Below are positions 35,809-59,404 of a stretch of DNA of 64,000 bases, piece by piece. Numbering within the stretch: position 1 is the stretch's first letter; every line of letters begins with the position of its first letter. A program made the translations under genes and the position numbers. This stretch comes from Obrimoposthia wandeli (taxonomy: Eukaryota), in assembly GCA_977020255.1 (NCBI GenBank), contig CDROCS010005962.1, positions 1 through 64,000 of the forward strand, read 5' to 3'. Under the pieces are notes generated by a model. It had not been told where the DNA came from. It searched no databases and worked only from the letters and a program-made list of their open reading frames with translations.

Positions 35809-35959
35809 AACATGCATTACTTATAACGGCTATTTTTGTGAAATTAACAGCAGAATTAATATGATACTCACTCTAGATTCTATAAAGTTTAAAGCGGGTG
35901 TCTCTTTAACTTGCTATTCTACAGGTTCGTTATACGACTAATCAAATTAAGGTGTCAAG

Positions 35960-38895: not shown

Positions 38896-39161
38896 TATAC
38901 CCAAGCCACTTAAAAATGCAGTTTCAGAGCTAAGCTAGGAAATCAGGTCAAGGCGCAGCACGAAGACAATGGTTATTCCCTTATCAAGTGCTGCAACGCA
39001 GAGATGGTTTTCTAGCTTAGCTCCCTTCGGGCAAGGCGATAAAGGGTCATCTCCGGCGTTATTGATTTCGACAATGGAACAACCATTTTCTTCAATCAAT
39101 GCCTTGGTGCTAACCCTTTCTCGACTTGCTGAATCCTGCATCTTCAAGTGGCTTGGGTATA
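38896..39161. mobile_element. 266-bp MITE of the TATACCCAAGCCACT family
   Basis: Terminal inverted repeats TATACCCAAGCCACTTAAAAATGCAG and TATACCCAAGCCACTTGAAGATGCAG, with an internal hairpin. Confidence 0.85.
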
Positions 39162-40054: not shown

Positions 40055-40190
40055 ACGTTCTCCATAGTGCTAATGATGTGTCTAGAATATTTCTAGCAAT
40101 GCTGCTAGCAGTAAGGCACTAGCTAATTTGTTTTTATATGAGTCATTATTTTATTCTTATTTTTAACATTATTCTTATTATGGATAGTTA

Positions 40191-40237
40191 GTTATAAGAA
40201 CTATTCATTTGTTTAATTTAATGGCTAGACCTAGCAT
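40191..40237 (+). promoter_or_regulatory. LysR-type box plus sigma-70 promoter, copy 1
   Basis: 29-bp GTTATAAGAACTATTCATTTGTTTAATTT identical to 43418-43446; TTGTTT-N17-TAGCAT. Confidence 0.75.
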
Positions 40238-42882: not shown

Positions 42883-43014
42883 TAACGGGTATTAATGATG
42901 GGAGTGGCTCATATCGATTGAATGAAGTGTTCAACAGCTTAAAACAGCTTTAAGTTGTTGAGAACGCATTTGTTTGTTGTTAATTGATACGATGACGTTC
43001 AGTGTGTGGTTTGG

Positions 43015-43072
43015 AACAGCCTAGTGATATTTTATTGTGCTATTGGTGCAATAAAATATCACTAGGCTGTTT
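43015..43072. terminator. Long hairpin (23-bp arms), possible bidirectional terminator
   Basis: AACAGCCTAGTGATATTTT(T)ATTG pairs with CAATAAAATATCACTAGGCTGTT. Confidence 0.55.
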
Positions 43073-43080
43073 ATTATTAC

Positions 43081-43228
43081 CTTATCGACTTGCCCACAGG
43101 GATCTATGCTAGAAAATCAATCCTGTATTGCAACACTTGATAAGGGAGCGATCATTGTTGGCTTACCGCGCCTTGATCTGAATGCCTAACTTGGATATTA
43201 AACTGCACCTTGAAATGGAACGTTTATA
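43081..43228 (-). repeat. Degenerate partial copy of the 38896-39161 MITE, inverted
   Basis: TTATCG.CTTGCCC..AGGGA.CTA.GCTAGAAAA...CACTTGATAAGGGA...GCGCCTTGA.CTGA aligns with the reverse complement of ~38896-39045. Confidence 0.7.
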
Positions 43229-43417
43229 GATGGAGGTACATTGAAGAAAGCTTCACTTATCATCAATACTACCTGATTAACTTTCCCTCCTTTAAAGTTA
43301 ATAGCAATTTATCTCCCAATTCGTATCCACGTAGTTTTTTGATGTATCGCAATAATTACCCATCTAAAAATCATTCATCTAAAAATCACCCACCTAAATT
43401 CGTTTGAAGAATACTAG

Positions 43418-43464
43418 GTTATAAGAACTATTCATTTGTTTAATTTTAAAATTGCGCATAGCAT
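43418..43464 (+). promoter_or_regulatory. LysR-type box plus sigma-70 promoter, copy 2
   Basis: The same 29-mer and the same TTGTTT-N17-TAGCAT as at 40191. Confidence 0.75.
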
Positions 43465-43609
43465 GAATTAGTCGCATTAATCCGATGTTTAACTGTGTTA
43501 ATGGTTAACTGTGTTGATGCTTAATTATGTTGGTGGTACAAATAAAATGATAACAAGAGCAAACGTTAGCTTAATACAAATCCAACTTATAGTGGAAGTT
43601 TTGTAATTT

Positions 43610-44332
43610 ATGGCGGCTATTTACCTTATTCGTCACGGGCAGGCATCATTTGGCAAAGCTGATTATGATCAACTGTCTGAAAAGGGGTGCCAACAGTCAC
43701 AGCTACTTGGGCAATATTGGCAAGCACTTGCGAGCCCCGATAAAATTTTTTCTGGCGCATTGTTGCGTCACGAACAAACACTTGAGGGTTTCTTAAAAGG
43801 CTATCAAGGTAATAAACCTGCTTCTGTTATACATTCCGGTTTTAACGAATTTAATCATGTTGATATGCTGACCCGTTATGATGTGCAATGGAAAAGCTTT
43901 GCCGAGATGGCAGCAATTATCAGTAAACAGCCTGAGGCAAATAAGGTCTTTCAAAAAGAGTTTGCTTTAGCGCTTAATCGCTGGGTTAGCGGTGAATATG
44001 ATGATGACTATACCGAAAGCTGGTCACAATTTAAAAAGCGTTGTATTGCTGCGTTGCACGATGTTATTGACCAAGAGTTAAATGCGAAAAAAGCTTTTAA
44101 TCAGGTAGCACCGTCTAAAAATATTTGTATTTTCACCTCTGGCGGTACTATTTCAGTACTGGTTCAACATATTTTAGGTTTGTCTGATCAAAGTACATTA
44201 TCAGTCAATCAACAATTACGTAATACCGGTGTGACAAAATTACTTTTTACAAAAGACAGTATCAGTATTGATTACTTGAATAATTATGGTCATTTAACGC
44301 AAGCGGGTAATGACTGGGACACCTTTAGGTAA
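43610..44332 (+). CDS. Histidine phosphatase family protein
   Basis: LIRHGQAS catalytic motif, RH..T, NE and FTSGG. Confidence 0.88.
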   Translation: MAAIYLIRHGQASFGKADYDQLSEKGCQQSQLLGQYWQALASPDKIFSGALLRHEQTLEGFLKGYQGNKPASVIHSGFNEFNHVDMLTRYDVQWKSFAEMAAIISKQPEANKVFQKEFALALNRWVSGEYDDDYTESWSQFKKRCIAALHDVIDQELNAKKAFNQVAPSKNICIFTSGGTISVLVQHILGLSDQSTLSVNQQLRNTGVTKLLFTKDSISIDYLNNYGHLTQAGNDWDTFR

Positions 44333-44378
44333 ACGCAGTTAACAAAACAAAACAAAAAATTTAAATAGGAATGTAGAT

Positions 44379-45146
44379 ATGAGTACCAATTTATTTGATT
44401 TAACAGGAAAAATTGCTTTAGTCACTGGCGCAAGTCGTGGTATTGGCGAGCAAATAGCAAAATTACTGGCAGAAAATGGCGCCCATGTCATTGTATCAAG
44501 TCGCAAAATTGATGGCTGCCAAGCTGTTGTTGAACAAATTGTTGCTGCGGGTGGCAGTGCGCAAGCAATCGCCTGTCATATCGGTGAGATGGATCAAATA
44601 GAAAGCATTTTTAAGCAAATATCAGCCGAGCACGGCAAGCTCGATATCTTAGTCAATAATGCCGCGGCAAATCCTTATTTTGGTCATGTACTTGATACCG
44701 ACCTAGCTGCATTTCAAAAAACCGTTGATGTGAATATTCGTGGTTACTTTTTTATGTCGACCCTAGGCGCTAAATTAATGAAGGAAAATGACGGTGGGGC
44801 AATTGTTAATGTTGCTTCTATTAATGGTGTAATTCCTGGAGATTACCAAGGTATTTACTCGATTACTAAAGCAGCGGTTATCTCAATGACCAAAACGTTT
44901 GCCAAGGAATGTGCGCAGTTTAATATTCGTGTTAACGCCTTACTGCCTGGCGGCACAGATACCAAATTTGCTTCAACCTTAGTAAATAACCCTAAAATAT
45001 TAGAACAAATGCTACAGCACGTACCGATGAAACGTGTTGCACAGCCTGAAGAAATGGCCGGCACGGTTTTGTATTTGGTCTCGAACGCTTCTAGCTACAC
45101 CACAGGTACAGCGATAAATGTTGATGGTGGTTATTTAATTGGCTAA
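44379..45146 (+). CDS. SDR oxidoreductase
   Basis: TGASRGIG, NNAA and YSITK motifs. Confidence 0.9.
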   Translation: MSTNLFDLTGKIALVTGASRGIGEQIAKLLAENGAHVIVSSRKIDGCQAVVEQIVAAGGSAQAIACHIGEMDQIESIFKQISAEHGKLDILVNNAAANPYFGHVLDTDLAAFQKTVDVNIRGYFFMSTLGAKLMKENDGGAIVNVASINGVIPGDYQGIYSITKAAVISMTKTFAKECAQFNIRVNALLPGGTDTKFASTLVNNPKILEQMLQHVPMKRVAQPEEMAGTVLYLVSNASSYTTGTAINVDGGYLIG

Positions 45147-45306
45147 ATGCAGTTAGCTTTAGCTTAAGTTCAATTAGGTTATAAAAAGACCAATGAGCCG
45201 TGTGACTTATAGTGAGCAGACGGTAACAATTTTGAGCACTAAAATTTTTCAGTAAAAACTGCTCAGTAAAAATTTATCATAAAAATTAGAAAAGTTAGGA
45301 AATATA

Positions 45307-46422
45307 ATGAGTAACAATAACGCAGAAAAGCTTTTTCAGTCATTCTCAGCAGGTAGTTTAACCTTAAAAAATCGTACCGTTATGGCGCCGATGACCCGCA
45401 CTTTTTCACCTAATTATATTCCAACCGATGACGTTGCAAAATACTATCGCCGTCGTGCACAAGGTAATGTAGGTTTAATTATTACCGAAGGAACGTTTAT
45501 TTCGCACAAAGCGGCTAATGGCTATGAACGTGTCCCTGCATTTTTTGGTGAAGAAGCGTTAGCGGGTTGGAAGCATGTGGTTGATGAAGTACATGCAGCC
45601 GGAGGAAAAATAGCGCCACAACTATGGCATGTTGGCTCAGTACGAAAAGAAGGTATCGGACCAGACAAAGCGGTTCCTGCCTATAGTCCTTCAGGTTTAT
45701 ACAAGCCGGGCGCACCAAATGGTGTTGCGATGAGCCAAGCAGATATCGATGAAGTGGTGGCTTCATTTGCTCAAGCCGCCGCTGACGCAAAAGCTATTGG
45801 CTTTGATGCCATTGAAGTCCATGGCGCGCATGGTTATTTAGTTGACCAATTCTTTTGGGAAGGCACCAATCAACGTAGCGATAAATATGGTGGTTCATTA
45901 GAAAACAGAGCACGTTTTGGCGTTGAAATTGTTCAAGCTATTCGTGCAAAAGTGGGTGCAGACTTTCCTATAATCTTTAGGTTTTCACAATGGAAACAAC
46001 AAGATTACAACGCCAAACTTTGTCAAACGCCAGAAGAGTTAACAACATTTTTAACACTATTAAGCGATGCAGGTGTCGATGTTTTTCATGCCAGTACTCG
46101 ACGTTTTTGGTTACCTGAGTTTGAAGGCTCAGATCTTAACCTTGCGGGTTGGACGAAAAAAATCACCCATAAGCCGGTTATTACTGTTGGTAGTGTGGGC
46201 TTAGATAGTGACTTTACCGGTGAAGGTAGTGCTGATTTAGGCGGGACATCAAACCCAACGGGTATCGATGGCTTATTAGCTCGCTTAAATAATGATGAAT
46301 TTGATCTTGTTGCTATTGGTCGTGCTTTGCTCGTTGATCCTGAATGGGTTAATAAAATACAGCACAATCAAGAAGATGAAATAGCACCGTTTAATAAAGA
46401 TGCATTAATGAAGTTAAGTTAA
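45307..46422 (+). CDS. NADH:flavin oxidoreductase (old yellow enzyme family)
   Basis: MAPMTR, QLWHVG and EVHGAHGYL motifs. Confidence 0.9.
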   Translation: MSNNNAEKLFQSFSAGSLTLKNRTVMAPMTRTFSPNYIPTDDVAKYYRRRAQGNVGLIITEGTFISHKAANGYERVPAFFGEEALAGWKHVVDEVHAAGGKIAPQLWHVGSVRKEGIGPDKAVPAYSPSGLYKPGAPNGVAMSQADIDEVVASFAQAAADAKAIGFDAIEVHGAHGYLVDQFFWEGTNQRSDKYGGSLENRARFGVEIVQAIRAKVGADFPIIFRFSQWKQQDYNAKLCQTPEELTTFLTLLSDAGVDVFHASTRRFWLPEFEGSDLNLAGWTKKITHKPVITVGSVGLDSDFTGEGSADLGGTSNPTGIDGLLARLNNDEFDLVAIGRALLVDPEWVNKIQHNQEDEIAPFNKDALMKLS

Positions 46423-46570
46423 TTACAGGTATTAGCGTACGCTCAATGTCACAAAAGTGAATGCTAAATATAGGTGTAAATAGCAGAGATAATGTATCGC
46501 ACCGTTAACGCTCTACGTAGGTAAGGCGTTAACAAATGACTCATAGTAAAAATAATAATAAGGATTTCCC

Positions 46571-47785
46571 ATGGATTTTGAATACAGCGACAAGGTTAAA
46601 GCATTAATGGCCCGTGTTAACGCTTTTATGGACGAGCACGTTTATCCTGTTGAAGCACTTATGCATGAGCAAGTAGCGAAAAATCAGTGGACAACACCAA
46701 CGCTGATGGAAGAGTTAAAAGCGAAAGCAAAAGCACAAGGTTTATGGAATTTATTTTTACCTATCAGTTATGGCAAATATAGTGCTGGCCTGACTAACTT
46801 AGAATACGCACCACTGGCCGAAATTATGGGTAAAGTGATGTGGGCACCAGAAGTATTCAATTGCGCCGCACCAGATACCGGAAACATGGAAGTGTTAGCA
46901 AAATACGGTAGTGAAGCGCAGAAAAAACAATGGTTAGAGCCATTACTTGCAGGCAAAATTCGTTCAGCGTTTGCTATGACAGAGCCAGAAGTCGCGTCAA
47001 GTGATGCCACTAATATTGAACTACGTATTGAACGTGAAGGTGATGAATACGTGATCAATGGTCGAAAATTCTATATCAGTGGCGCATGTCGAAAACAATG
47101 TGAAATTATGATCGTGATGGGCAAAACTGACCCAGACAATAGCAATCGCTACATTCAGCAATCTCAAGTACTCGTACCTATGAACACACCCGGCGTAACT
47201 ATGGTGCGTCCAATGCAAGTATTTGGTTATAACGATGCACCAGAAGGGCATGCAGAAATCACTTTTGAGAATGTCCGTGTACCGGTTGAAAATATTATTG
47301 TGGGTGAAGGTAAAGGTTTTGAAATTGCCCAAGGTCGTTTAGGCCCCGGACGTATTCATCACTGCATGCGTTCCATTGGTGTTGCCCAACGTGCGCTTGA
47401 TTTAATGTGTCATCGCGTTAATGAGCGTGTTGTTTTTGGTCGCCCGATGATCAAACAGCAATCGGTTCGTGAAGACATTGCCATTTCAGCTTGTCAAATT
47501 GAGCAAGCCCGTTTGATGACCTTAAAAGCGGCTCAAAAAATGGATGCTGAAGGTAATAAAGCGGCGAAAGATATTATCGCGATGATAAAAATTGTCGCGC
47601 CGAATATGTCACTTGATGTGCTCGACCGTGCTATTCAATGTCATGGCGCCGTGGGGGTCAGTCAAGATACCTTCTTAGCGCATGCTTATGCGGGGCAAAG
47701 AACGTTGCGTTTAGCTGATGGTCCGGATCAAGTGCACATGATGCAACTTGGACGCGATTTAGTTAAAAAAACAACTAACACTTAA
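46571..47785 (+). CDS. Acyl-CoA dehydrogenase, ACAD10/11-LvaC-FadE2 type
   Basis: [49 protein letters not shown] and LADGPD motifs. Confidence 0.9.
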
Positions 47786-47918
47786 CACAACATATTGACT
47801 CAAAGTACGTTAAGCAAGCGCACTTTGACCATGCGTGCTTTGAGCCGATAAGGTCAGTGAGTGAGAAAAATAAAACTGTTCATATTACGTGAGTTAAACA
47901 AATACGAGAGATATAAAA

Positions 47919-48962
47919 ATGTCAGCAGTGGTTTCCTTTGATATCGAAAAATTGGCCCATTATCTTGCGACCCATGTTGCAGATTTTGTGGGTCCCATCA
48001 CGTTAGAAAAGTTCTCTGGCGGCCAGTCAAACCCTACATTTAAGGTTACTGCTCATTCTGGCCTCTATGTGCTACGCAGCCAACCACCCGGCAAGCTTTT
48101 AAAATCAGCACATGCGGTAGACCGAGAGTTCCAAGTGCTTGATGCCTTGAAAGATACTGATGTACCTGTTGCTCAGGTCCATCACCTTTGCACCGATACT
48201 AGCGTTATTGGATCCATGTTTTATTTGATGGAATATTGCGATGGAGCGGTTTATTGGAGTGCGTCATTACCCGAAATTTCAACAAACGCCTACCGAAGTC
48301 AACTTTATGATGCAATGAACAAAGCGTTAGTGGCGCTGCATCGTGTTGATCTTGACGCTGTCGATTTACGCAGTTATGGCAAAGCCGGTAATTACTTTGA
48401 GCGACAGTTCGGCCGATGGACCTCACAATATCGCGCGACAGAGCTACAAACCATTAATGCTATGGACAACTTAATACTCTGGTTAGAAAGCCACTTACCC
48501 GCAGACGATGGTAGAGTTTGTTTAGTACACGGTGATTTTCGATTAGACAACATCATGTTTAAAAAAGATAAACCAGAAGTTATCGCTGTGCTTGATTGGG
48601 AATTATCAACGCTAGGACATCCTTTTTCAGACTTAGCCTATCAATGTATGCAGTTGCGTATGCCGCAAGGTTTAGGGTCTATTGACGGTTTGCAAGGTAT
48701 TGATAGAGCAAGTTTAGGTATACCTACTGAGCAAGAGTACGTGGCAGATTACTGTCAGCGTATGGGGATTACTCAGATTGACAATTGGACCTTTTATCTT
48801 GCCTTTAGCTTTTTTAAGTTAGCGGCCATTGTGCAAGGTGTAGCAAAACGTGCATCACAAGGGAATGCCTCAAACGAGCACGCGAATAAGGTTGGCGCTT
48901 TTGTTGAGCCTTTAGCAAAAATGGCTTTGAGCATCATTGCCGAAAATGCCGAAAATGCTTAA
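47919..48962 (+). CDS. APH-family phosphotransferase, ACAD10/11 kinase-LvaA type
   Basis: GGQSNPT, HAVDRE, HGDFRLDN and DWELSTLGHP..DLAY motifs. Confidence 0.9.
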   Translation: MSAVVSFDIEKLAHYLATHVADFVGPITLEKFSGGQSNPTFKVTAHSGLYVLRSQPPGKLLKSAHAVDREFQVLDALKDTDVPVAQVHHLCTDTSVIGSMFYLMEYCDGAVYWSASLPEISTNAYRSQLYDAMNKALVALHRVDLDAVDLRSYGKAGNYFERQFGRWTSQYRATELQTINAMDNLILWLESHLPADDGRVCLVHGDFRLDNIMFKKDKPEVIAVLDWELSTLGHPFSDLAYQCMQLRMPQGLGSIDGLQGIDRASLGIPTEQEYVADYCQRMGITQIDNWTFYLAFSFFKLAAIVQGVAKRASQGNASNEHANKVGAFVEPLAKMALSIIAENAENA

Positions 48963-49099
48963 AAAATCGATTCAGAGCAACCCGATGAAAAGTAAGCCAT
49001 AAAAGCAGTATAAAGAAATAGTCATTAAAACAAGTGACATAACAGGCTGTTAAAAAGCAATAAATTATCAAACAACATTTGTAATGTAAGGAAATTAAC

Positions 49100-49861
49100 A
49101 TGGATCCACTATTAGATTTCACAGGAAAAGTTGCCGTTATTACCGGCGCAGCGCAAGGTTTCGGTAAGCTTCTCGCAGAAGAATTGGCTAAGCGTGGTGC
49201 CAAGTTAGTTATTAGCGATATTAAAGCTGCTGATGTACTAAAAGTTGCTGAGGCGATCGCATCAACAGGTGCTGACGTTATCGGCATGGCGTGTGATGTC
49301 TCAAAAAATGAAGACTGTAAAGCGATGGTAGATACTGCTATCAAGCACTTTGGCCGCGTTGATATTGGTGTCAATAATGCCGGTATCGCCCACGAGTTTA
49401 TGCCATTGCATGACATTGATGAAGACATTATGGACTCGCAATTTGCCGTTAATGTCAAAGGCGTGCAATTTGGTATGCGTCATCAAATACAACAAATGTT
49501 ACAACAAGGTGAAGGGGCTATCCTAAATGTTAGCTCAATGGCCGGCTTGAATGGTGCGGCAAGAGGCAGTGCTTATGCCATGGCAAAACATGCGGTGATT
49601 GGTTTAACCAAAACCGGTGCGGTGGAATACGGTCGTAACAACATTCGTATCAATGCTATTTGCCCGTTTTTTACCTTAACACCTATGGTGACTAACTTTG
49701 CTGACGAAGAGCAACAAAAAAGAATGAGTAAAGGCGCGCCTATGCATCGTTTAGGCGAGCCAAAAGAGATTGTTGCCATGATGCTAATGATGCTGTCTCC
49801 AGCGAATACCTATATGACCGGACAATGTATTGCGATAGATGGCGGCGTATCTGCTCAATAG
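49100..49861 (+). CDS. SDR oxidoreductase
   Basis: TGAAQGFG, NNAG and YAMAK motifs. Confidence 0.9.
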   Translation: MDPLLDFTGKVAVITGAAQGFGKLLAEELAKRGAKLVISDIKAADVLKVAEAIASTGADVIGMACDVSKNEDCKAMVDTAIKHFGRVDIGVNNAGIAHEFMPLHDIDEDIMDSQFAVNVKGVQFGMRHQIQQMLQQGEGAILNVSSMAGLNGAARGSAYAMAKHAVIGLTKTGAVEYGRNNIRINAICPFFTLTPMVTNFADEEQQKRMSKGAPMHRLGEPKEIVAMMLMMLSPANTYMTGQCIAIDGGVSAQ

Positions 49862-50009
49862 CTCTTTATATTTGAGTATTTTATATTTGAGTATTTCAGA
49901 ATAGAGTGTTGCTATATAACACACTGATTTAACGAGAGTATATTAGCCATCGTACGTTATTAACTATGGCTAACACTATCGACAAGTTAAAAGATAAGAA
50001 GAGAAATGT

Positions 50010-51815
50010 ATGACTGCTACATTAATGAATGAACGAGATCTTGAATTTATGCTCTATGAGCTTTTTGATAGTGAGTCACTGATCGAAAGATCCCGTTATC
50101 AAGACCATGACCGTCAGACTTTCAATGAAGTCATTAATACTGCTAAGGCGATAGCGGAAAAACACTTCTTACCTATTCGTCAAAAGCTAGATACTCACCA
50201 ACCGACCTTTGATGGTAAAAAAGTCACGCTTATTCCAGAGTTAAAACCAGCCATTGAGGCCGTTATCGCCTCAGGTATCTCTTCGGCAACGGCAGACTAC
50301 GACTTAAATGGTATGCAGTTACCGCCCATTGTTGCCAGTGTCGCAAGCACGTATTTAACCGCGGCAGGTGGTGTCGGTTTAGGCTATAACATGCTGACTA
50401 ACGCCAATGCGAATTTACTGGAAGCACATGGCAGTGAAGCCCTGATTGAAAAATGGGTCAAGCCAATGCGCTCAGGTCGCTTCATGGGCACTATGGCAAT
50501 GACAGAGCCAGGCAGCGGCTCAGGCTTGGGCGATTTAATTACTAAAGCTATAAAAACTGAAGATGGTACTTACCGTATTAGTGGTAATAAAATTTATATT
50601 TCGGGTGGCGATCATAATTTAAGTGAAAATATCGTTCATTTAGTCTTGGCGCGTGTTCAAGGTGCCCCTAAAGGTGTAAAGGGCATATCACTGTTTGTGG
50701 TGCCTAAAATTTTAGTCAACGATGACGGTACACTAGGCGCTGATAATGAAGTAGCACTCGCTGGCCTATTTCATAAAATGGGTGGTCGGGCGCAAACATC
50801 AACAGCGTTAAGTTTCGGTGAAAAAGACGGTGCCATAGGTTATTTAGTGGGTGAAGAAAACCAAGGCCTTAAGTACATGTTTCATATGATGAATGAAGCA
50901 CGAATTATGGTGGGTACAAGCGGTGCTACTTTGGCGGTTGCTGGTTATCAATATGCCGTTGATTACGCAAAAAATCGTCCACAAGGGCGCTTACCCTCTT
51001 GTAAAGACCCACTTTCTCCTATGGTTAATATAATCGAACATGCGGATGTTCGCCGCATGTTACTGGCGCAAAAAGCCTATGCTGAAGGGGCACTAGCACT
51101 GGTACTTTATGGCTCACAACTCAGCGATGACGAAAAAACTGCTCTCACACCAGAAGCACAAGAACATGCCCATGTGTTATTGAATTTCTTAACGCCTATT
51201 ATTAAAACTTGGCCGTCGGAATACGGCACAAAAGCCAATGATTTAGCCATTCAAGTACTTGGTGGACACGGCTATATTAATGAACATCCTGTTGAGCTGT
51301 TTTATCGTGATAATCGCTTAAACGCCATTCATGAAGGTACAACCGGTATTCAATCACTTGATTTATTGACCCGAAAAGTACCGATGAATCAAATGGCGGG
51401 TTACTCAGCAACCTTAAGTGAAATTTATAAAACTATCGAGCAAGCCAAACAATATAACAACTTAACTGAGTTTTCAGCGCAGCTTATTGCTGCGGTTGAC
51501 ACCCTGAAAAAAACTACAGAAGTTGTATTAACCGCGATGCAAACCACCCATATTGACTTAGCACTGGCGAACTCAGTGAAATATTTAGAGCTGTTTGGTC
51601 ACGTTATTGTTGGCTGGTTATGGTTAAAGCAGGGCATTGTCGCGAGTAAAGCATTAACCCAGCAACCACACCAAGCTGATGAAAATTTTTATCACGGAAA
51701 ACTCCAAGCATTACAGTATTTTTATCGTTTTGAACTACCAGAAATAGCGCTGTGGTCGAGTATTTTACGTAACAGTGATAGTACAACGTATGACATGAAA
51801 GCGGCTTGGTTTTAA
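50010..51815 (+). CDS. Long (600-aa) acyl-CoA dehydrogenase
   Basis: MAMTEPGSGS, KIYISGG, MFHMMNEAR, GGHGY and IHEGTTGIQ motifs. Confidence 0.9.
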   Translation: MTATLMNERDLEFMLYELFDSESLIERSRYQDHDRQTFNEVINTAKAIAEKHFLPIRQKLDTHQPTFDGKKVTLIPELKPAIEAVIASGISSATADYDLNGMQLPPIVASVASTYLTAAGGVGLGYNMLTNANANLLEAHGSEALIEKWVKPMRSGRFMGTMAMTEPGSGSGLGDLITKAIKTEDGTYRISGNKIYISGGDHNLSENIVHLVLARVQGAPKGVKGISLFVVPKILVNDDGTLGADNEVALAGLFHKMGGRAQTSTALSFGEKDGAIGYLVGEENQGLKYMFHMMNEARIMVGTSGATLAVAGYQYAVDYAKNRPQGRLPSCKDPLSPMVNIIEHADVRRMLLAQKAYAEGALALVLYGSQLSDDEKTALTPEAQEHAHVLLNFLTPIIKTWPSEYGTKANDLAIQVLGGHGYINEHPVELFYRDNRLNAIHEGTTGIQSLDLLTRKVPMNQMAGYSATLSEIYKTIEQAKQYNNLTEFSAQLIAAVDTLKKTTEVVLTAMQTTHIDLALANSVKYLELFGHVIVGWLWLKQGIVASKALTQQPHQADENFYHGKLQALQYFYRFELPEIALWSSILRNSDSTTYDMKAAWF

Positions 51816-51953
51816 CAATATTAGGGGTAGGCCTTGAGCTCTTAAAAGTACCGCTATTGAGAGTTAAGGATAAAGAGTTTAAAGGCGTTAGTCGACACAA
51901 CCAGTTATTACCGACTGATTCAAAAATAATGTTTTGCTAAATAGGGATTTACT

Positions 51954-52415
51954 ATGCCAACCATAATAAAAAAACATCAAATAGCCGATTATATAGGCTT
52001 TCAAGCCGAGCCAACGCCTTGGCATGAGATCAGTCAGACGCAAATTAACCAATTTGCTGATTGTACGCTCGATCATCAATTTATTCATGTTGATGAAGAA
52101 AAGGCGAAAGCAACACCTTTTGGCTCGACCATCGCACACGGATTTTTGTCGTTGTCTATGTTGTCGCATTTTGCCGAAGACTTTAGTGTCATTATCGAAG
52201 GCTTTTATATGGGCTTAAACGCAGGTTTCGATAAAGTCAGATTTTTACAGCCCGTTAAAGTTAATAGCCGCGTTAGAGCACATGCAAAAACACGGGTTAT
52301 TGAAGAGAAAAAACCGGGTCAGTATCGTTTATGTACCGAAGTGAGCGTTGAAATAGAAGGTTGTGATACCCCTGCACTTGTCGCCGAGTGGGTTTCAGTA
52401 CAAATGGTTAAGTGA
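51954..52415 (+). CDS. MaoC/NodN-like (R)-enoyl-CoA hydratase
   Basis: D.QFIHVD and TIAHG motifs (hot-dog fold). Confidence 0.88.
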   Translation: MPTIIKKHQIADYIGFQAEPTPWHEISQTQINQFADCTLDHQFIHVDEEKAKATPFGSTIAHGFLSLSMLSHFAEDFSVIIEGFYMGLNAGFDKVRFLQPVKVNSRVRAHAKTRVIEEKKPGQYRLCTEVSVEIEGCDTPALVAEWVSVQMVK

Positions 52416-52520
52416 TCGGGGTTAGGAAATATTAGCTAGGCTGTATGAGTTCAACAAAATTGGCTAGCCGATATTAGTTAAGCCGTGTTGATGAGAGAAA
52501 GAGCATTTTAAGGAAATATT

Positions 52521-53441
52521 ATGTCAATCAGTTTTGAAGGTAAGGTCGCCATAGTTACTGGCGCAGGTAACGGTTTAGGTCGCTCTCACGCTTTCGCGCT
52601 TGCGGCACGTGGTGCAAAAGTTGTGGTTAATGATTTAGGTGGCGCTCGCGATGGTAGCGGCGCTTCATCACAAGCCTCTCAAGAAGTGGTGCGTTTAATT
52701 GAAGAGCAAGGCGGAGAAGCAATCAGCCATGGTGCCAATGTGGCCAACTTTGATGAAGTACAAGACATGGTTGATCAGGCCATGGAAAAATGGGGTCGCG
52801 TTGATATTCTTATCAATAATGCCGGTATTTTACGTGATAAATCGTTCTCAAAAATGACTTTAGATGATTTTAAACTGGTGATGGATGTTCATGTTATGGG
52901 CTCCGTTAACTGCACAAAAGCGGTATGGGAAATCATGCGTGCACAAAATTATGGTCGCATTGTCATGACAACATCATCAAGTGGTATGTACGGTAACTTT
53001 GGTCAATCAAATTACGGCGCAGCAAAAATGGCCGTGCTTGGCCTGATGAACACGTTAGTACTCGAAGGCGCAAAAAATAATATTCGTATCAATGCCTTAG
53101 CACCAACGGCGGGTACACGCATGACGGAAGATTTAATGCCGCCTGAAATTGTCCAAGCCTTTGCACCCGAAGCGGTAACCGCAGGTATGTTAACGCTGTG
53201 TGATGACGATGCACCTAATCGCTTTATTTTATGTGCGGGTGCGGGTGGTTATTCAAGTGCCAGTATTTTTGAAACCGAAGGTTGTTTTATTCCACAGCAT
53301 CAACAAAGTCCTGAAACGGTTCGTGAACAATGGTCTGAGCTGACCGATGAAAGTGCGCAAGCATCTTTGGCATCAGGGGCAAAACAAGGTGAAAAGTTTG
53401 TTTTAAAAGCGATGGCATTCATGAAATCGCAACAGAAGTAG
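52521..53441 (+). CDS. MFE-2/HSD17B4-like 3-hydroxyacyl-CoA dehydrogenase (SDR)
   Basis: TGAGNGLG, VVVNDLGG, NNAGILRD and GNFGQSNYGAAK motifs. Confidence 0.85.
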   Translation: MSISFEGKVAIVTGAGNGLGRSHAFALAARGAKVVVNDLGGARDGSGASSQASQEVVRLIEEQGGEAISHGANVANFDEVQDMVDQAMEKWGRVDILINNAGILRDKSFSKMTLDDFKLVMDVHVMGSVNCTKAVWEIMRAQNYGRIVMTTSSSGMYGNFGQSNYGAAKMAVLGLMNTLVLEGAKNNIRINALAPTAGTRMTEDLMPPEIVQAFAPEAVTAGMLTLCDDDAPNRFILCAGAGGYSSASIFETEGCFIPQHQQSPETVREQWSELTDESAQASLASGAKQGEKFVLKAMAFMKSQQK

Positions 53442-53630
53442 TTACGCGTAACTATAGTTGGTCAGGCTTTGGCCCTTTGTAACTGGGCTTTAGTCTGATT
53501 TTAAGTGACGATTAGTCGTGTTAGAGAATTATTGTCATTAGCCGTCATTAGTGCTCGTCATCAGTGTTGATCATTAGCCGTTTTCGACAACTAATTTAAG
53601 CGAATTTAAGCGAATTAATAGGAAGTTATC

Positions 53631-54812
53631 ATGAGAGAAGCAGTCATAGTATCCGTAGCACGTACGCCAATCGGTAAAGCATATCGCGGCGCATTTAATG
53701 ATTTATCCGCCCCAACATTAGCGGCCGTTGCGGTAAAAGCTGCCGTAGAGCGTGCCGGTATCGATGTTAATGACATCGAAGATTGTATTTTTGGTGCAGC
53801 ATTAACCCAAGGTAACCAAGGCATGAACTTTGGTCGCCAAGTGGCTATGGCTGCTGAGCTACCGGTATCTGTTGCTGGCATGACCATCGACCGTCAATGT
53901 TCATCAGGTTTAATGTCGATAGCAACTGCAGCTAATCATATTGTTTGTGATGGTATGCAAGTCATTGTTGCCGGAGGTTGCGACTCTATTAGTTTAGTAC
54001 AAAACGATAAAATGAATATGTATCGTGCGGTTGACCCAAGCGTGAAAGCTTATCGCCCAGCGATTTATATGCCGATGTTAGATACTGCTGAAATAGTGGC
54101 AGAACGTTACAATATTTCACGCGCAGAGCAAGATGCTTATGCGCTTAAATCTCAACAGCGCACCGCTGCGGCACAAGCAGCGAACAAATTTGATGATGAA
54201 ATTGTCCCAGTGACGGCAACAAAGCTAGTGATGGATAAAGCGACCGGCGATATCAGTAAAGAAGAAGTCACGCTAACTAAAGATGAAGGCAACCGTCCAT
54301 CAACTAATATTGAAGGCTTGTCAGCATTAAAAGCGGTAAAAGATAACGGCACGATTACTGGCGGCAATGCTTCTCAGTTGTCCGATGGTGCAGCAGCCGT
54401 TGTGGTGATGGAGCGAGCATTAGCCGAAGAACGAGGCCTTAAACCCTTAGGCGCATATCGTGGCATGGTAGTGGCCGGTTGTGAACCCGATGAAATGGGC
54501 ATAGGTCCGATTTACGCGATCCCAAAATTGCTCGAGCGTAATAATTTAACCATGGACGATATTGGTTTATGGGAAATTAACGAAGCCTTTGCCGTACAAG
54601 TTTTATATTGCGCCGAAAAATTAGGTATTAAAGAAGACCGTTTAAATGTTGATGGCGGAGCCATTTCAATTGGCCATCCTTATGGCATGAGCGGCACACG
54701 TATGGTTATGCATGCCTTAATTGAAGGTAAACGACGTGGCGTAAAATATGTCGTTATCAGTATGTGTATAGGTGGCGGCCAAGGTGCAGCTGGTTTGTTC
54801 GAAGTGCTTTAG
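53631..54812 (+). CDS. Acetyl-CoA C-acyltransferase (thiolase)
   Basis: RQCSSG, NEAF, GHPYG and MCIGGGQG motifs. Confidence 0.92.
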
Positions 54813-54951
54813 TTATCAATCAGTAACATGTAGAGTAGAAAGTCGTTGATTCATCTTAACAAGGTTACAAATAACAAACCGAGTAACAGCATTAACAATA
54901 ATAACAATGGCACTAAACACACTATATCGTAGTGATTGGGGAGATAATAAA

Positions 54952-56610
54952 ATGGAAAAAGTTTGGCTTGAAAAGAGTTATCCAGCAGGCGTTGAATTTG
55001 AAATAAATCCAGACAAATATAACTCTTTAGCGGATTTGTTTTTAAAATATACCAAGTTATACAAAGATAATGTCGCCTTCATTAATATGGGGAGCAGCAT
55101 CACTTATCAAGAGCTTGGCCAGCAAGCGAATGACTTTGCTGCCTATTTACAGCATGACTTAGGATTAGTAAAAGGCGATAAATTTGCCATTATGATCCCT
55201 AATCTTTTGCAGTATCCCGTCGCCTTATTTGGTGCGCTCATTGCTGGTTTAACGGTCGTTAATGTTAATCCGCTTTACACCCCTCGAGAATTACAACATC
55301 AATTAAAGGACTCAGGCGCAAAATCTATCTTGATCCTTGAAAACTTTGCTCACGTACTGGAAACCGTGATTGATAAAACGGATATAGAGCGAGTGATCCT
55401 CACCGGTGTTGGTGACCGATTGAGTAAAATAAAGGGAGCACTTGTTAATTTCGTACTTAAATACCTTAAAAAACAAGTACCCGCATACAATTTACCTGGG
55501 GCGGTTAAATTTAATCAAACCATGGCGAAGGGAGCAACGCTGAGTTTTACGCCTGTTTCGGTTAGCGGAGAGGACTTAGCCTTTTTGCAATACACCGGTG
55601 GTACAACGGGTCCTTCAAAAGGCGCGATGTTAACGCACCGTAATTTGCTTGCCAACGTTGAACAATCAAATGCTTCCACTAAAAATGTTTACGAAATAGG
55701 TAAAGAAATAATGGTAACGGCCTTACCGATGTACCATATTTTTGCCTTAACCTCTAACTGCCTATGTTTTATTCCTTTTGGTGGCACCAACCTGTTAATT
55801 ACTAACCCAAGAGACATGGCCGGTTTCGTTAAAGAGTTAGATAAGTATCCTTTTACCGCGATTACTGGTGTTAACACCTTATTTAATGGCTTATTACATA
55901 CGCCAGGTTTTAAAGACCTTGATTTTAGTACTTTAAAACTAGGTTTTGCCGGCGGTATGGCAGTACAACGCCCAGTGGCTGAGCTTTGGGAAAAAGTGAC
56001 CGGTACGCGTTTATTAGAAGGTTATGGTTTAACGGAATGTTCGCCATTAGTAACCATGAGCCCTTACACTCAGGAAAGTTACAATGGCTCTATCGGTGTA
56101 CCTGCGCCTTCTACTGATGTGCGTTTAATTGGTGACGACGGCGAAGAAGTCGCTTTAGGTCAACCGGGAGAAATGTGGGTTAAAGGTCCGCAAGTCATGA
56201 AAGGTTATTACAATCGCCAAGACGCTACAGATGAAGTACTAAAAGATGGCTGGTTAGCCACCGGTGATATTGCCACAATGGACGAAAATGGCTTTTTCAG
56301 AATCGTCGATCGTAAAAAAGACATGATCATTGTTTCAGGTTTCAACGTCTTCCCGAATGAGATAGAAGAAGTACTTGTTATGCATAACGGTATTTTAGAA
56401 GCTGCAGCCATTGGTGTTAAAAATGATGTGACTGGCGAAGCGGTTAAAGTCTTTATTGTTAAGAAGGATCCTAACTTATCTGAGCAAGATATTTTTGCTC
56501 ATTGTAATGAAATGCTGACCAATTATAAACGTCCTAAATTTATTGAATTTATGGATGAGTTACCGAAAACCAATGTTGGTAAAGTGCTGAGAAAAGAGTT
56601 ACGAAAATAA
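54952..56610 (+). CDS. fadD: Long-chain fatty acid-CoA ligase
   Basis: [22 protein letters not shown] and DRKKDMI motifs. Start placed after GGAGA. Confidence 0.85.
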
Positions 56611-56830
56611 GTCGATAGCACCGTTGTTCTTCGAGCTTAATGCCAGCGAAGCGCAACGGTTGTCGCAATTAACGTTAATAAATAGAGTGTTTAATCGTTC
56701 ATAAGCATAACTTAATTGAATATACCTTTAGACACCGTTTATTTTAAATTAACGACTTTTTTATCCCATCAGCATAATCACTAAGTGACTAAGTGCTGAG
56801 ATAAAGAAGCTTTCCATAAAGAGAGAAATA

Positions 56831-57829
56831 ATGACTACCTATACTGCAATTAACTTAATCGCTCGACCAACTGGCGGACCAATCGGCCCAGATCTTTTTC
56901 AAGTTGTAGAAAAAGAACTTCCTAGCGTTGGCGAAGGACAATTTTTAGTAAAACAAAACCATATGTCGTTAGACCCAGCCATGTTTGGTTGGATGAGCCC
57001 AGATACCGAAAGCTACATTCCGCCAGTGGCACTAGGCGATGTTATGCGCAGCTCGGGCATTGGTGAAGTCGTGGACAGCAAGCATCCTGATTTTCAAGTT
57101 GGCGATCGCGTTATGGGCATGATGGGCTGGACTGAATATCACTTAAGTAATGGCGCTGGACTAAACAAAGTCACAGCGCCGTTACCTGATGAAGCGATAT
57201 TATCGGTTTTTGCTTTACCAGGTTTAACCGCTACACAAGGCCTATACAGCATTGGTAAGCCACAAAAGGGCGAAACCTTGGTTGTGTCAGGCGCGGCAGG
57301 CTCAGTGGGTTCAATTGTTGGCCAACTCGCAAAAGCCGATGGTTTAACCGTTATTGGTGTTGTTGGTAGTGACGAGAAAGCCGATTGGATTATTAACGAA
57401 TTAGGCTTTGACGGCGCCGTTAATTATAAATCGGATGATTTAGCACAAAAATTAGCCGAGCTGACGCCAAACGGTATTGATGTATATTTTGAAAACACTG
57501 GCGGACCCATACAGCACCATGTGTTTGAACGCATGAATGCCCATGGCCGTATCGTTGTTTGTGGTTTAATTGCCGATTATCCAAAACAAACACCTGATTT
57601 AGCGCCAAACTGGATCCCGATCATCAAAAAGCGTTTAACCATTCAAGGTTTTACAATGCCAGACCATTTTGGCGAAATTCCCGCATTACTTGAAAAGCTG
57701 ACACCGTATGTCATGCAAGGAAAAATTAAGCATCGTGCGCATGTACTTAACGGTTTGGAGTCGGCGATGACGGGCTTGAATTTGTTTTTTACCGGTCAAA
57801 ATAAAGGTAAGTTAATCGTTAAAATTTAA
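56831..57829 (+). CDS. NADP-dependent enone/alkenal reductase (CurA/PTGR family)
   Basis: SLDPAM..WM, VSGAAGSVG, YFENTGG and GKLIVKI motifs. Confidence 0.85.
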   Translation: MTTYTAINLIARPTGGPIGPDLFQVVEKELPSVGEGQFLVKQNHMSLDPAMFGWMSPDTESYIPPVALGDVMRSSGIGEVVDSKHPDFQVGDRVMGMMGWTEYHLSNGAGLNKVTAPLPDEAILSVFALPGLTATQGLYSIGKPQKGETLVVSGAAGSVGSIVGQLAKADGLTVIGVVGSDEKADWIINELGFDGAVNYKSDDLAQKLAELTPNGIDVYFENTGGPIQHHVFERMNAHGRIVVCGLIADYPKQTPDLAPNWIPIIKKRLTIQGFTMPDHFGEIPALLEKLTPYVMQGKIKHRAHVLNGLESAMTGLNLFFTGQNKGKLIVKI

Positions 57830-57843
57830 CCTTAGTCGGGTTT

Positions 57844-57944
57844 AATTCCCCGCCACTTGCGGCGAAAAGTAGTTAGATCATGACTAATTAATATACCTCT
57901 CTTCGCGAAGCGAATTTCGTCTAGGCGAAACCCTTGGGGCGAGG
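57844..57944. repeat. Short palindrome-ended element (IS200/605-like ends, tentative)
   Basis: CCCCGCCACTTGCGGCG at the left, CCCTTGGGGCGAGG at the right and an internal TTCGCGAA. Confidence 0.35.
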
Positions 57945-57947
57945 TTT

Positions 57948-58328
57948 TTAATTTGGCCGTCGCTTGGTCAAAAGTCATAAAACTTGGACACAAAATTCAG
58001 CGCGTTTAATCAAAGCCAAAAAACCTTGTACGTTAGAAGTGCCCCCTGATGATGCTAAAAATTTAGGCATTACAACCGGGCAGTTACTCAATGTCAGTTC
58101 TATTTCTGGTGTGCTACAAATCAACGCGGTGATCAACGATGACATTCAACGTGGCGTGGTTAGTATGCCTCAGGGGTGGGGCATAGCCCAAAAGACACTA
58201 ATATGTCAGTGGCTGCCACGAACCCGGGCGTGAATATTAATGATTTAACCGATGTTGTTCAGGTTGACAGGCTAACCGGAAATGCTGCACTTAATGGTAC
58301 TTCTATTGCGATTAGCGTCGTTTCTTAA
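57948..58328 (+). pseudogene. C-terminal remnant of a molybdopterin oxidoreductase
   Basis: LIGRR..W.QNS.RL...DDA...GVVSMPQGWG, then after a frameshift PGVNINDLTD..VD.LTGNAALNG. Confidence 0.75.
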
Positions 58329-58565
58329 TCGTTGCTTTAACCGTCGCTTAACTATGACATTGAATACGGCATTTAATAAGAAGGTGAATGCCGCATTGAA
58401 AAATTTAAAACAAGCGTTTGATTTTATTGATGCTTAGACGATATTATTAGCTATAACATCTCATTATTGTCTACAAAGTAGCGCAAAAAATAGCGCACCA
58501 AATAATTCATAAATTAATTTAATGATGCCAATTCACTACAGTGCATCATCTTAATAGGTAAAAAC

Positions 58566-59399
58566 ATGTTTAACAGTACTGAAAACTATATTGCATCAGA
58601 CGAACTTCGCTTAGCGGTTAACGCCGCTATTACACTAGAAAAACCTTTGTTGATCAAAGGAGAGCCGGGCACAGGTAAAACTCAATTAGCTGAAGAGTTG
58701 GCAAAATCACTTAATTGTAAATTATATCAGTGGCATATTAAATCGACTACTAAAGCACAGCAGGGCTTATACGAGTACGATGCCGTGTCACGCTTGCGCG
58801 ATAGCCAATTAGGCGATGAGCGTGTGAACGATATTTCAAATTATATTGTTAAAGGTAAACTTTGGCAGGCTTTTGAAGAAGAGCAGCGTCCAATTTTGTT
58901 AATTGATGAAATTGACAAAGCCGATATCGAATTTCCAAATGATCTTTTGCAAGAGCTTGATAAGATGGAGTTTTTCGTTTATGAAACCCAAGAGGTGATC
59001 AAAGCTAAACAACGTCCTATTATCATTATTACTTCAAATAATGAGAAAGAACTGCCTGATGCTTTTCTTCGTCGTTGTTTCTTTCACTATATTAAATTTC
59101 CAACGAAAACAGAGATGGAGCAAATTATTGCAGTTCATCATCCGCATGTAAAACAAGAGTTATTAGCCCACACGTTAGAAGTGTTTTTTGACCTTAGAGA
59201 CTTGCAAGGCATTAAGAAAAAACCGTCTACATCAGAGCTAATTGATTGGTTAAAACTACTAGTTGCCGATGATGTTGCGCAAGATGTACTGATCAATAAA
59301 AAGTCAGACATTATTCCGTTATTTGGCGCACTACTTAAAAATGAGCAAGATGTATCATTACTTGAAAAACTGGCTTTTCTTAACCGTAGAAACAGGTAA
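58566..59399 (+). CDS. MoxR-family AAA+ ATPase (CoxD-like)
   Basis: GEPGTGKT, LLIDEIDKAD and LPDAFLRRC motifs. Confidence 0.92.
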   Translation: MFNSTENYIASDELRLAVNAAITLEKPLLIKGEPGTGKTQLAEELAKSLNCKLYQWHIKSTTKAQQGLYEYDAVSRLRDSQLGDERVNDISNYIVKGKLWQAFEEEQRPILLIDEIDKADIEFPNDLLQELDKMEFFVYETQEVIKAKQRPIIIITSNNEKELPDAFLRRCFFHYIKFPTKTEMEQIIAVHHPHVKQELLAHTLEVFFDLRDLQGIKKKPSTSELIDWLKLLVADDVAQDVLINKKSDIIPLFGALLKNEQDVSLLEKLAFLNRRNR

Positions 59400-59404
59400 G
59401 TAAC

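Follow-up and report, generated by a model that had tools for sequence, protein, structure and literature searches.

A conserved kinase–acyl-CoA dehydrogenase cassette in a candidate catabolic gene cluster for 4-oxo- and 4-hydroxy fatty acids from a Colwelliaceae bacterium

Contig CDROCS010005962.1 of the Obrimoposthia wandeli assembly (GenBank GCA_977020255.1) contains, within the 64,000-nucleotide stretch analysed here (positions 1 to 64,000; hereafter the window), a cluster of genes that combines a kinase and an acyl-CoA dehydrogenase (ACAD) of the ACAD10/11–Lva type with a histidine phosphatase, short-chain dehydrogenases/reductases (SDRs), ene-reductases and enzymes of β-oxidation. We listed the open reading frames (ORFs) of the whole window, assigned them to families using Pfam and NCBIfam and identified structural relatives by sequence searches of the PDB (Table 1). 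The cluster comprises 12 co-oriented ORFs on the plus strand, with the first start codon at 43610 and the last stop codon ending at 57829. These limits match those given in a preliminary description of this DNA exactly, and the Pfam and NCBIfam assignments agree with the families named there. An exact-sequence look-up of the kinase gave no recorded match; its nearest relatives are found in Cognaticolwellia and Colwellia (85% identity) and, for this reason, the DNA evidently originates from a Colwelliaceae bacterium. The same gene order (phosphatase, SDR1, old yellow enzyme (OYE), ACAD, kinase, SDR2, long ACAD, MaoC, SDR3, thiolase, FadD, optionally a patatin, and reductase) is common to Colwellia, Cognaticolwellia, Shewanella and Thalassotalea. 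Since it repeats in about 25 loci, the arrangement evidently is not due to chance. The optional gene, encoding a patatin-like lipase, lies between those for FadD and the reductase in 14 loci and is absent from the window.

Table 1. Genes and predicted regulatory elements at the locus, with window positions and the basis of each assignment
Feature	Position	Strand	Basis
LysR-type regulator, divergent, outside the 12-gene cluster	39110-40054	-	HTH_1 and LysR_substrate
Predicted operator/promoter copy 1 (5' of receptor gene)	40184-40237	+	ATAGT-N11-ACTAT in GGATAGT..ACTATTC; TTGTTT 40209-40214, 17-nt spacer, TAGCAT 40232-40237
TonB-dependent outer-membrane receptor, 818 aa, outside the 12-gene cluster	40426-42882	+	Plug and TonB_dep_Rec_b-barrel
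Likely terminator of receptor gene	43015-43071	+	Perfect 23-bp-stem hairpin and T-rich tail
Predicted operator/promoter copy 2 (5' of 12-gene cluster)	43411-43464	+	LysR-type box; TTGTTT 43436-43441, 17-nt spacer, TAGCAT 43459-43464
Histidine phosphatase, branch 1 (His_Phos_1)	43610-44332	+	Pfam 2.7e-18
SDR1, 255 aa	44379-45146	+	NF005446, 472 bits (cutoff 373)
OYE-family ene-reductase (Oxidored_FMN), 371 aa	45307-46422	+	Pfam 3.7e-72
ACAD10/11–LvaC-type ACAD, three-domain, 404 aa	46571-47785	+	Pfam N, M and C domains; ACAD11 matches
APH-fold kinase, ACAD10/11–LvaA-type	47919-48962	+	PF01636 7.5e-50; ACAD11 kinase-domain match
SDR2, 253 aa, NAD(H)-type	49100-49861	+	Pfam/NCBIfam and β2 Asp motif
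Long ACAD, 601 aa, FadE5/FadE1/DmdC-type	50010-51815	+	Acyl-CoA_dh_C domain (Pfam); PDB matches
MaoC-type hot-dog hydratase, 153 aa	51954-52415	+	Pfam MaoC 2e-22
SDR3, 306 aa, MFE-2-type (3R)-hydroxyacyl-CoA dehydrogenase, NAD-type	52521-53441	+	PDB 2et6, 7e-120
3-Ketoacyl-CoA thiolase	53631-54812	+	Thiolase_N/C; TIGR01930, 413 bits (over cutoff)
FadD-like ligase	54907-56610	+	NF006523, 871.5 bits (slightly below equivalog cutoff 884)
NADPH double-bond reductase, PTGR1/LTB4-12HD/CurA family	56831-57829	+	ADH_N_2 (PF16884) 5e-35 and ADH_zinc_N

The core of the cluster is formed by the adjacent genes for the 404-residue ACAD and the kinase, whose family assignment is based on PDB alignments together with the identities published in PMC11342911. 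The kinase matches a Cupriavidus protein (3dxp, 3e-106) and, over residues 6-339, the kinase domain of mouse ACAD11 (5.8e-80). The ACAD aligns with human (2wbi, 9e-130) and mouse (8v3u, 2.5e-129) ACAD11, with ordinary ACADs matching at just ~1e-42. Alignment of the kinase with ACAD11 shows that it retains the Asp/Asn pair (mouse D220/N225; HGDFRLDN) and the CoA-contacting Arg (mouse R176; YFERQ). It also has the DWE metal motif (LDWELS), the β3 Arg (YVLRSQP) and the αC Glu (VDREF), and a DWE motif, an αC Glu and a β3 Arg in place of Lys have likewise been described for the homologue from C. thermarum (10.1101/2025.09.10.675409). In the ACAD, the 14-residue stretch of the phosphate cradle that includes R626, R631 and HCMR is identical to that of mouse and human ACAD11, and the segment LRLADGPD, which harbours the catalytic Asp that replaces the usual Glu (mouse D753), is common to the window protein and ACAD11. 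The roles of R626, R631, H634-C-M-R637 and D753 in ACAD11 and of D220/N225 in its kinase domain have been tested or modelled in a study including mutagenesis (PMC12440821), and the PDB alignments show that every residue considered there is kept in the window proteins. By all sequence criteria for family membership, the kinase and the ACAD are thus clearly orthologous to the respective halves of ACAD11, consistent with the preliminary description, which had assigned them to the ACAD10/11 and LvaA/LvaC type.

Kinases and ACADs of this type convert 4-hydroxyacyl-CoA via 4-phosphoacyl-CoA to 2-enoyl-CoA (PMC12440821, PMC11342911), with the ACAD10 kinase preferring the R alcohol (PMC11342911). In B. 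pseudomallei, whose genus contains homologues with 59% identity to the window kinase, the proteins Q63VL0/Q63VL1 turn 4-OH-C6-CoA into 4-P-OH-C6-CoA and then hexenoyl-CoA in vitro and can replace the ACAD10 domains (PMC11342911). We therefore propose that the window kinase is a putative 4-hydroxyacyl-CoA kinase and its partner a putative 4-phosphoacyl-CoA phosphate-eliminating enzyme.

The 3' half of the cluster encodes what appears to be a dedicated chain-shortening machinery. SDR3 matches the (3R)-hydroxyacyl-CoA dehydrogenases of multifunctional enzyme type 2 (MFE-2), including yeast and human representatives (2et6, 7e-120; 1gz6, 6e-79; 1zbq, 1e-75; 3oml, 5e-72), and the long ACAD is related to 6ijc (6e-95), 8png (4e-94) and FadE5 (6kpt, 1e-83). 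The MaoC protein does not match the strict hydratase-2 motif [YF]-x(1,2)-[LVIG]-[STGC]-G-D-x-N-P-[LIV]-H; its segment FADCTLDHQFIH retains an Asp and a His (in LDHQFIH). Two further enzymes belong to families that reduce activated double bonds. The OYE carries the active-site motif HGAHGY and, over residues 4-220, matches SYE4, OPR3, PETN reductase and NemA; its C-terminal 150 residues are divergent from solved OYEs. The double-bond reductase contains an AxxGxxG-type NADPH Rossmann motif (AAGSVGS) and is related to 4b7c (1e-80), plant 2-alkenal reductases, PTGR2 and PTGR1; it also matches the CurA equivalog model (1.3e-97), at 326.9 bits and thus under the cutoff of 440. The PDB and NCBIfam matches thereby uphold several points of the preliminary description, namely the presence of two ene-reductases, the MFE-2-like character of the SDR3/MaoC/thiolase set and the long-chain types of the ligase and the second ACAD.

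The remaining three proteins, two SDRs and the phosphatase, accompany the core pair far beyond the Colwelliaceae. SDR1 displays the NADP(H) signature of classical SDRs (TGASRGIG and SSRK); among proteins of solved structure, it matches the peroxisomal carbonyl reductase DHRS4 best. With 255 residues, it has the same length as the P. citronellolis homologue of LvaD, an enzyme that reduces 4-oxo- to 4-hydroxyacyl-CoA (PMC6692424). We propose SDR1 as a putative LvaD-like 4-oxoacyl-CoA reductase. SDR2, by contrast in cofactor signature, has an Asp at the end of β2 (VISDIK), as typical of NAD(H)-dependent enzymes. In the phosphatase, a divergent member of its superfamily, the catalytic R8-H9-G10 as well as R53 and E80 are invariant among 20 orthologues, as are H54 and H228, and the turn that usually reads S-H-G reads T/S-S-G-G in all 20 of them. 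Mapped by motif position alone, the second core His that is usual in the superfamily appears to be replaced by a Ser. The protein has no match by sequence in the PDB, and a name search for its homologues yielded generic names alone. Its AlphaFold 2 model (pLDDT 92) features a large helical cap insertion, and a Foldseek search with this model retrieved other histidine phosphatases only, at 15-21% identity, which confirms the superfamily fold.

To place these proteins in context, we collected 80 genomic loci around relatives of the kinase and clustered all of their ORFs into families. This comparison delineated a five-part cassette consisting of the histidine phosphatase, an NADP-type SDR, the ACAD, the kinase and an NAD-type SDR. 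In the window, its genes span positions 43610-49861 under one regulator, with the OYE gene inserted. Among the 80 loci, the kinase family is represented in 74, SDRs in 72, the ACAD11-type ACAD family in 71, a divergent LysR gene in 59 and the phosphatase family in 57, and most loci, those of Streptomyces and Pseudoalteromonas among them, have a second SDR alongside the cassette. Complete or partial versions of the cassette occur in Gamma-, Beta- and Alphaproteobacteria, Streptomyces and Deinococcus (distant examples being loci L083, L087, L088, L089 and L090). Its order is phosphatase–kinase–SDR–ACAD in Caballeronia and Azoarcus (SDR 64% identical to SDR1, ACAD 55% identical to that of the window), ACAD–SDR–SDR–kinase–phosphatase next to a TetR gene in Streptomyces and ACAD–SDR–kinase–phosphatase–SDR next to a LysR gene in Pseudoalteromonas. 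Deinococcus radiodurans has genes for an SDR, MaoC, PaaI and an ACAD as well as a kinase–phosphatase pair; this set, which includes the PaaI thioesterase, lies on plasmid 3 (locus L086, 1-7714) beside nadE and a gene of the superoxide dismutase family. Sulfitobacter plasmids combine MaoC, two medium-chain dehydrogenase/reductase (MDR) proteins, ACADs, two SDRs, thiolase, phosphatase and kinase. In one of them (L082, 3036-10014), no ACAD11-type ACAD was detected at E ≤1e-10 and a coverage of ≥60%; kinase and phosphatase are found there beside two other ACADs, possibly a variant in which a different ACAD pair partners the kinase.

The association is also apparent when approached from the phosphatase. 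The phosphatase gene adjoins that of the kinase in at least about 30 of the 48 plasmid or chromid records in which a homologue of the phosphatase is encoded. A profile search with the phosphatase family returned 1370 representative clusters at E ≤1e-30, and the three representatives looked up (ranks 31, 81 and 150 of the 150 listed) all lie in the cassette, in one case at a locus with only the LysR, phosphatase and ACAD genes visible before a cut gene. The preliminary description had regarded the phosphatase as a feature of a long-chain version of the pathway. The protein is indeed present, but it is not peculiar to such a version, because it forms part of this widely conserved cassette and had already been noted in P. 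citronellolis, where a histidine phosphatase of 218 residues is encoded between the LvaA and LvaC homologues and, as its discoverers suggest, may act on 4-phosphovaleryl-CoA (Habe et al., 2019; PMC6692424). The three studies on ACAD10/11 do not discuss a histidine phosphatase partner (PMC12440821, PMC11342911, 10.1101/2025.09.10.675409).

Around this cassette, different lineages have assembled different sets of accessory enzymes. The ene-reductases that accompany the core in the 80 loci are of the OYE (30), FadH-like (12), zinc-type MDR (22) and PTGR-like (18) kinds, with Microbulbifer, for instance, combining a FadH-like OYE–Pyr_redox_2 protein with the same core. On a Sphingobium plasmid (L084), the kinase gene is followed by genes for an epoxide hydrolase and a P450. 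Judging from these gene contents, the common theme across lineages is a predicted 4-hydroxyacyl-CoA module surrounded by carbonyl- and alkene-reducing enzymes and by enzymes that release or oxygenate lipids.

The regulatory region provides a clue as to how the receptor gene relates to the cluster. In receptor-less loci of Colwellia and Shewanella, the spacer between the LysR and phosphatase genes measures 300-380 bp and contains, in a comparative alignment, one conserved element, composed of an interrupted dyad (GAATAGT-N11-ACTATTC, a LysR-type box of the T-N11-A form), TTGTTT, 17 nt and an invariant TAGCAT. The window contains two copies of this element in one orientation, which share a 29-nt identical core (40191-40219 and 43418-43446), and the 28-nt box pattern occurs at these two sites only within the 64 kb. 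Both copies are also present in the other receptor-bearing loci that were compared. The promoter was recognised by comparative alignment, with TTGTTT-17-TAGCAT being missed by a consensus promoter scan. Downstream of the receptor gene lies the sole strong hairpin in the region 42800-58600. We rejected co-transcription of the receptor gene with the cluster, given the 23-bp hairpin and the second promoter between them, and the receptor gene is therefore best described as a separate transcription unit. Since it carries a duplicate of the operator and promoter of the operon, the receptor is nevertheless predicted, very probably, to answer to the same regulator as the cluster. A receptor gene at this position is found in 7 of the 80 loci, all from Colwellia or Cognaticolwellia, and the protein did not match any specific NCBIfam family at cutoff. 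The previously proposed notion of a TonB-fed pathway is thus supported in part only: the receptor gene is terminated separately and restricted to seven loci, but it does have the duplicated LysR-type operator/promoter.

Several further observations concern receptors at this and related loci. Three receptor-less Colwellia loci contain two operator copies (L003, 5205-5887; L019, 5198-5860; L011, 5427-5803); two of them have a long LysR–phosphatase spacer of ~670 bp, and L003 keeps ~200 bp homologous to the receptor leader of the window. These double operators look like the footprint of a secondary receptor loss. Loci from Pseudoteredinibacter have an unrelated TonB receptor and a major facilitator superfamily transporter beside the LysR gene, an independently acquired arrangement. 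The window itself encodes another TonB-dependent receptor of 685 aa, unrelated to the first, with a gene for an FG-GAP repeat protein of 378 aa behind it (33751-37096, plus strand).

Collectively, these data make it probable that the cluster represents a LysR-controlled catabolic regulon for fatty acids whose ordinary β-oxidation is blocked by a 4-oxo or 4-hydroxy group, either present initially or gained during chain shortening. Family identities, catalytic residues, synteny and the operator duplication are directly established by our analysis; the substrates, the order of steps, the role of the phosphatase and the mode of import are what we infer. In the proposed sequence of events, FadD would convert a medium- or long-chain fatty acid to its CoA ester, which the FadE5-type ACAD, the MaoC hydratase, SDR3 as the MFE-2-type (3R)-dehydrogenase and the thiolase could then shorten. 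Once an oxygen function is located at C4, the NADPH-type SDR1 may turn 4-oxoacyl-CoA into (R)-4-hydroxyacyl-CoA, with the NAD-type SDR2 potentially oxidising the 'wrong' alcohol. The APH-fold kinase would then phosphorylate the 4-hydroxyl group, and the ACAD11/LvaC-type flavoenzyme would eliminate the phosphate to yield 2-enoyl-CoA, which could re-enter the cycle. The OYE and the PTGR-like reductase may reduce C=C bonds in conjugation with a keto or aldehyde group (enones, enals) or act on released 2,4-dienoyl species, and the histidine phosphatase might clear a phosphorylated side- or dead-end product. The TonB-dependent receptor, equipped with the same operator/promoter, probably imports the substrate in this strain. 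Judged by this gene content, the substrates would be medium- or long-chain fatty acids that are oxidised or bear a 4-oxo or 4-hydroxy group. Candidates compatible with this class, among which the sequence does not discriminate, are even-position hydroxy acids, gamma-lactones, 4-oxo- and 4-hydroxy-alkenoates as well as oxylipins derived from algae or from peroxidation.

It is tempting to speculate, albeit with considerable doubt, that the three cassette partners of the core pair provide the 4-hydroxy-acid pathway with an editing layer, so far overlooked in bacteria as well as in mammals. The two SDRs would invert (S)-4-hydroxyacyl-CoA to the kinase-preferred (R)-form via 4-oxoacyl-CoA, and the atypical phosphatase would recycle dead-end 4-phospho species, as a convergent counterpart of the phosphatase-fold haloacid dehalogenase (HAD) domain of ACAD10. 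The system of this Colwellia lineage might, in addition, obtain its substrate through a TonB-dependent receptor that takes up an oxidised lipid, which would be unusual for this class of transporter.

A number of points weigh against the catabolic regulon as outlined. The phosphatase, apparently devoid of the second core His, may have little activity or a regulatory role. Most related loci lack the receptor, whose gene is terminated separately. With intergenic gaps of 94-220 bp and weak hairpins at 46504-46533 and 49943-49973, the cluster may be transcribed as more than one unit. These hairpins, both small and imperfect, lie in the OYE–ACAD and SDR2–long-ACAD gaps, respectively, and could reflect processing, attenuation or chance. 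On the supporting side, contigs of a 90-95% relative that span the region from the phosphatase to the kinase gene are present in a marine metatranscriptome (RNA) library, which is weak evidence of expression in the sea; this support comes from contigs, with carry-over of DNA being possible. A further point against it comes from a 2026 preprint, according to which kinase domains of the ACAD10 type, those of prokaryotes among them, use 1-O-alkylglycerols as substrates and are activated by CoA esters (10.1101/2025.09.10.675409); this leaves more than one candidate substrate for the kinase family.

Alternative explanations also need to be considered. The cluster could serve the detoxification of lipid electrophiles, such as 4-hydroxy- and 4-oxo-alkenals and alkenoates, diatom polyunsaturated aldehydes or the cell's own peroxidised membrane lipids, rather than nutrition. 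The two ene-reductases indeed come from enal- and enone-reducing families (OPR3/NemA-like and PTGR1/2-alkenal reductase-like), the patatin lipase of related loci could free damaged acyl chains, and the cassette of D. radiodurans adjoins the superoxide dismutase-family gene. This idea differs from the catabolic regulon in purpose and is compatible with it in chemistry. However, Pfam and NCBIfam identify no aldehyde dehydrogenase or glutathione-dependent enzyme in the cluster, and the full ligase, β-oxidation set and receptor resemble a nutrient-acquisition layout, so that we consider a primarily protective role unlikely. Alternatively, the cluster might be a plain short-chain operon for levulinate, 4-hydroxyvalerate or gamma-valerolactone, equivalent to Pseudomonas lva, with the β-oxidation genes as mere neighbours. 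The combination of kinase, phosphatase, ACAD and 255-residue SDR equals that of the lva-like cluster 2 of P. citronellolis, which lies beside levulinate-induced genes, and the Burkholderia pair was assayed on C6 substrates. This possibility is nonetheless distinctly unlikely, because the ligase scores as a long-chain FadD rather than an LvaE-like medium-chain enzyme, the locus has no LvaR-type sigma-54 regulator, no gap with room for LvaB and no ActP-type LvaFG system, the entire order of 11-12 genes is kept over three or four genera, and the FadE5-type ACAD as well as the patatin lipase of relatives suggest longer, lipid-derived chains. A role of kinase and phosphatase in (ether) lipid salvage or turnover, with phosphorylation of alkyl- or monoacylglycerols, dephosphorylation of lipid phosphates and CoA esters as mere activators, appears very unlikely: it would accord with the phosphorylation of chimyl alcohol by several prokaryotic homologues of the ACAD10 kinase (10.1101/2025.09.10.675409), the constant company of the phosphatase and the patatin lipase in 14 related operons, but it does not account for the ACAD with an intact cradle (the full R…R…HCMR/Asp site, acting on 4-phosphoacyl-CoA) that is a near-constant neighbour of the kinase, adjoining it in 71 of 74 loci, and Pfam and NCBIfam reveal no glycerolipid acyltransferase or ether-lipid gene in the cluster, whose phosphatase is of the histidine rather than the HAD type of ACAD10.

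Beyond the 12-gene cluster, a pair of plus-strand genes directly downstream (58566-60577) encodes a MoxR-like AAA ATPase (277 aa) and a VWA/CoxE-like protein (390 aa). The MoxR-like ATPase also follows the reductase in loci L002 and L005 (95-97% identity). Further along the window lies a gene for an α/β hydrolase of the haloalkane dehalogenase subfamily (60669-61580, plus strand; NF002043, 480.8 bits, cutoff 265). In Colwellia sp. C2M11 (L004, ~19.7 kb), an 84% homologue of this hydrolase is encoded directly 3' of the double-bond reductase, and the enzyme may represent an additional accessory of the pathway.

The route by which a kinase and an ACAD process 4-hydroxy acids was defined first in Pseudomonas, in 2017, and then in mammals, in 2024-25 (PMC11342911, PMC12440821). 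Its natural substrates are still debated, with the 2026 preprint assigning the kinase to ether lipids. The cluster described here places both enzymes in a self-contained, co-regulated set together with a ligase, a chain-shortening cycle, ene-reductases, carbonyl reductases, a phosphatase and a putative importer. It thus offers a genetically tractable system to address the true substrate of the pathway, the role of the conserved phosphatase and SDRs and the use of the route by marine heterotrophs on algal or peroxidised lipids. Moreover, the multi-phylum distribution of the cassette gives its accessory proteins a concrete, testable context.

The searchable literature yielded nothing on this gene combination or on work with it in Colwellia. 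Likewise, we did not find in it the five-part cassette as a multi-phylum unit, its junction with ene-reductases and an MFE-2-like cycle in Colwelliaceae and Shewanella, or the recruitment of a TonB receptor through a duplicated operator. Individual parts of the system, by contrast, have well-characterised counterparts. With mammalian ACAD10 and ACAD11 (Rashan, 2025, PMC12440821; Paquay, 2024, PMC11342911), it shares the kinase fold, the atypical ACAD and the catalytic and phosphate-binding residues. In mammals, the activities are fused, whereas the window encodes separate proteins, in the gene order ACAD then kinase; ACAD10 has its HAD domain next to the kinase, whereas the window has a separate histidine phosphatase. 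Unlike ACAD10/11, the bacterial enzymes are under LysR control and accompanied by SDRs, ene-reductases and a dedicated β-oxidation set.

The lvaABCDE(FG) levulinate operon of P. putida KT2440 (Rand, 2017, as summarised in PMC6692424 and PMC12440821) encodes the kinase LvaA, the ACAD LvaC, the SDR LvaD and a ligase, which act via 4-phosphoacyl-CoA. The window likewise contains a kinase, an ACAD, an SDR and an acyl-CoA ligase. However, the sigma-54 regulator LvaR, the medium-chain ligase LvaE and the ActP-type LvaFG of P. putida contrast with a LysR regulator, a FadD-like ligase and a TonB receptor without ActP in the window. Judged by gap size, there is also no room for the 12 kDa LvaB, the partner of LvaA, because the gaps inside the cluster are ≤220 bp; in P. 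citronellolis, the histidine phosphatase stands in its place (PMC6692424). By published figures, LvaA is 29% identical to the kinase domains of ACAD10/11 (PMC11342911/PMC12440821), as against the close ACAD11 match and the Burkholderia identity reported above for the window kinase. The published description of the lva-like cluster of P. citronellolis LA18T shows the same kinase, histidine phosphatase, LvaC-type ACAD and 255-residue SDR, with this four-gene cluster adjoining the two most strongly levulinate-induced genes (PMC6692424). It differs, however, in its short-chain range, in its sigma-54 regulator, ActP transporter and ligase LvaE2, and in lacking the second SDR, the ene-reductases, the MFE-2-like set and the TonB receptor.

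The stand-alone kinase and ACAD of B. pseudomallei (Q63VL0/Q63VL1) are nearer to ACAD10 than LvaA/LvaC are (PMC11342911), and in other Burkholderia a phosphatase gene lies directly upstream of that for the kinase homologue. The four-gene cassette of Caballeronia lacks the added β-oxidation and ene-reductase genes, and that of Azoarcus is immediately preceded by genes for a ligase, a thiolase and another ACAD. A further parallel is provided by peroxisomal MFE-2 and the inactivation of oxylipins by PTGR1/15-PGDH: SDR3 resembles the MFE-2 dehydrogenase and is accompanied by a hot-dog hydratase, a thiolase and a reductase of the PTGR1/LTB4-12HD family, with the nearest solved protein of SDR1, DHRS4, being peroxisomal as well. 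The bacterial proteins are separate polypeptides, unlike MFE-2, and the likeness to eicosanoid inactivation is one of family alone. The core of the cluster represents a new member of a known system, whose phosphatase partner was noted in 2019 (PMC6692424).

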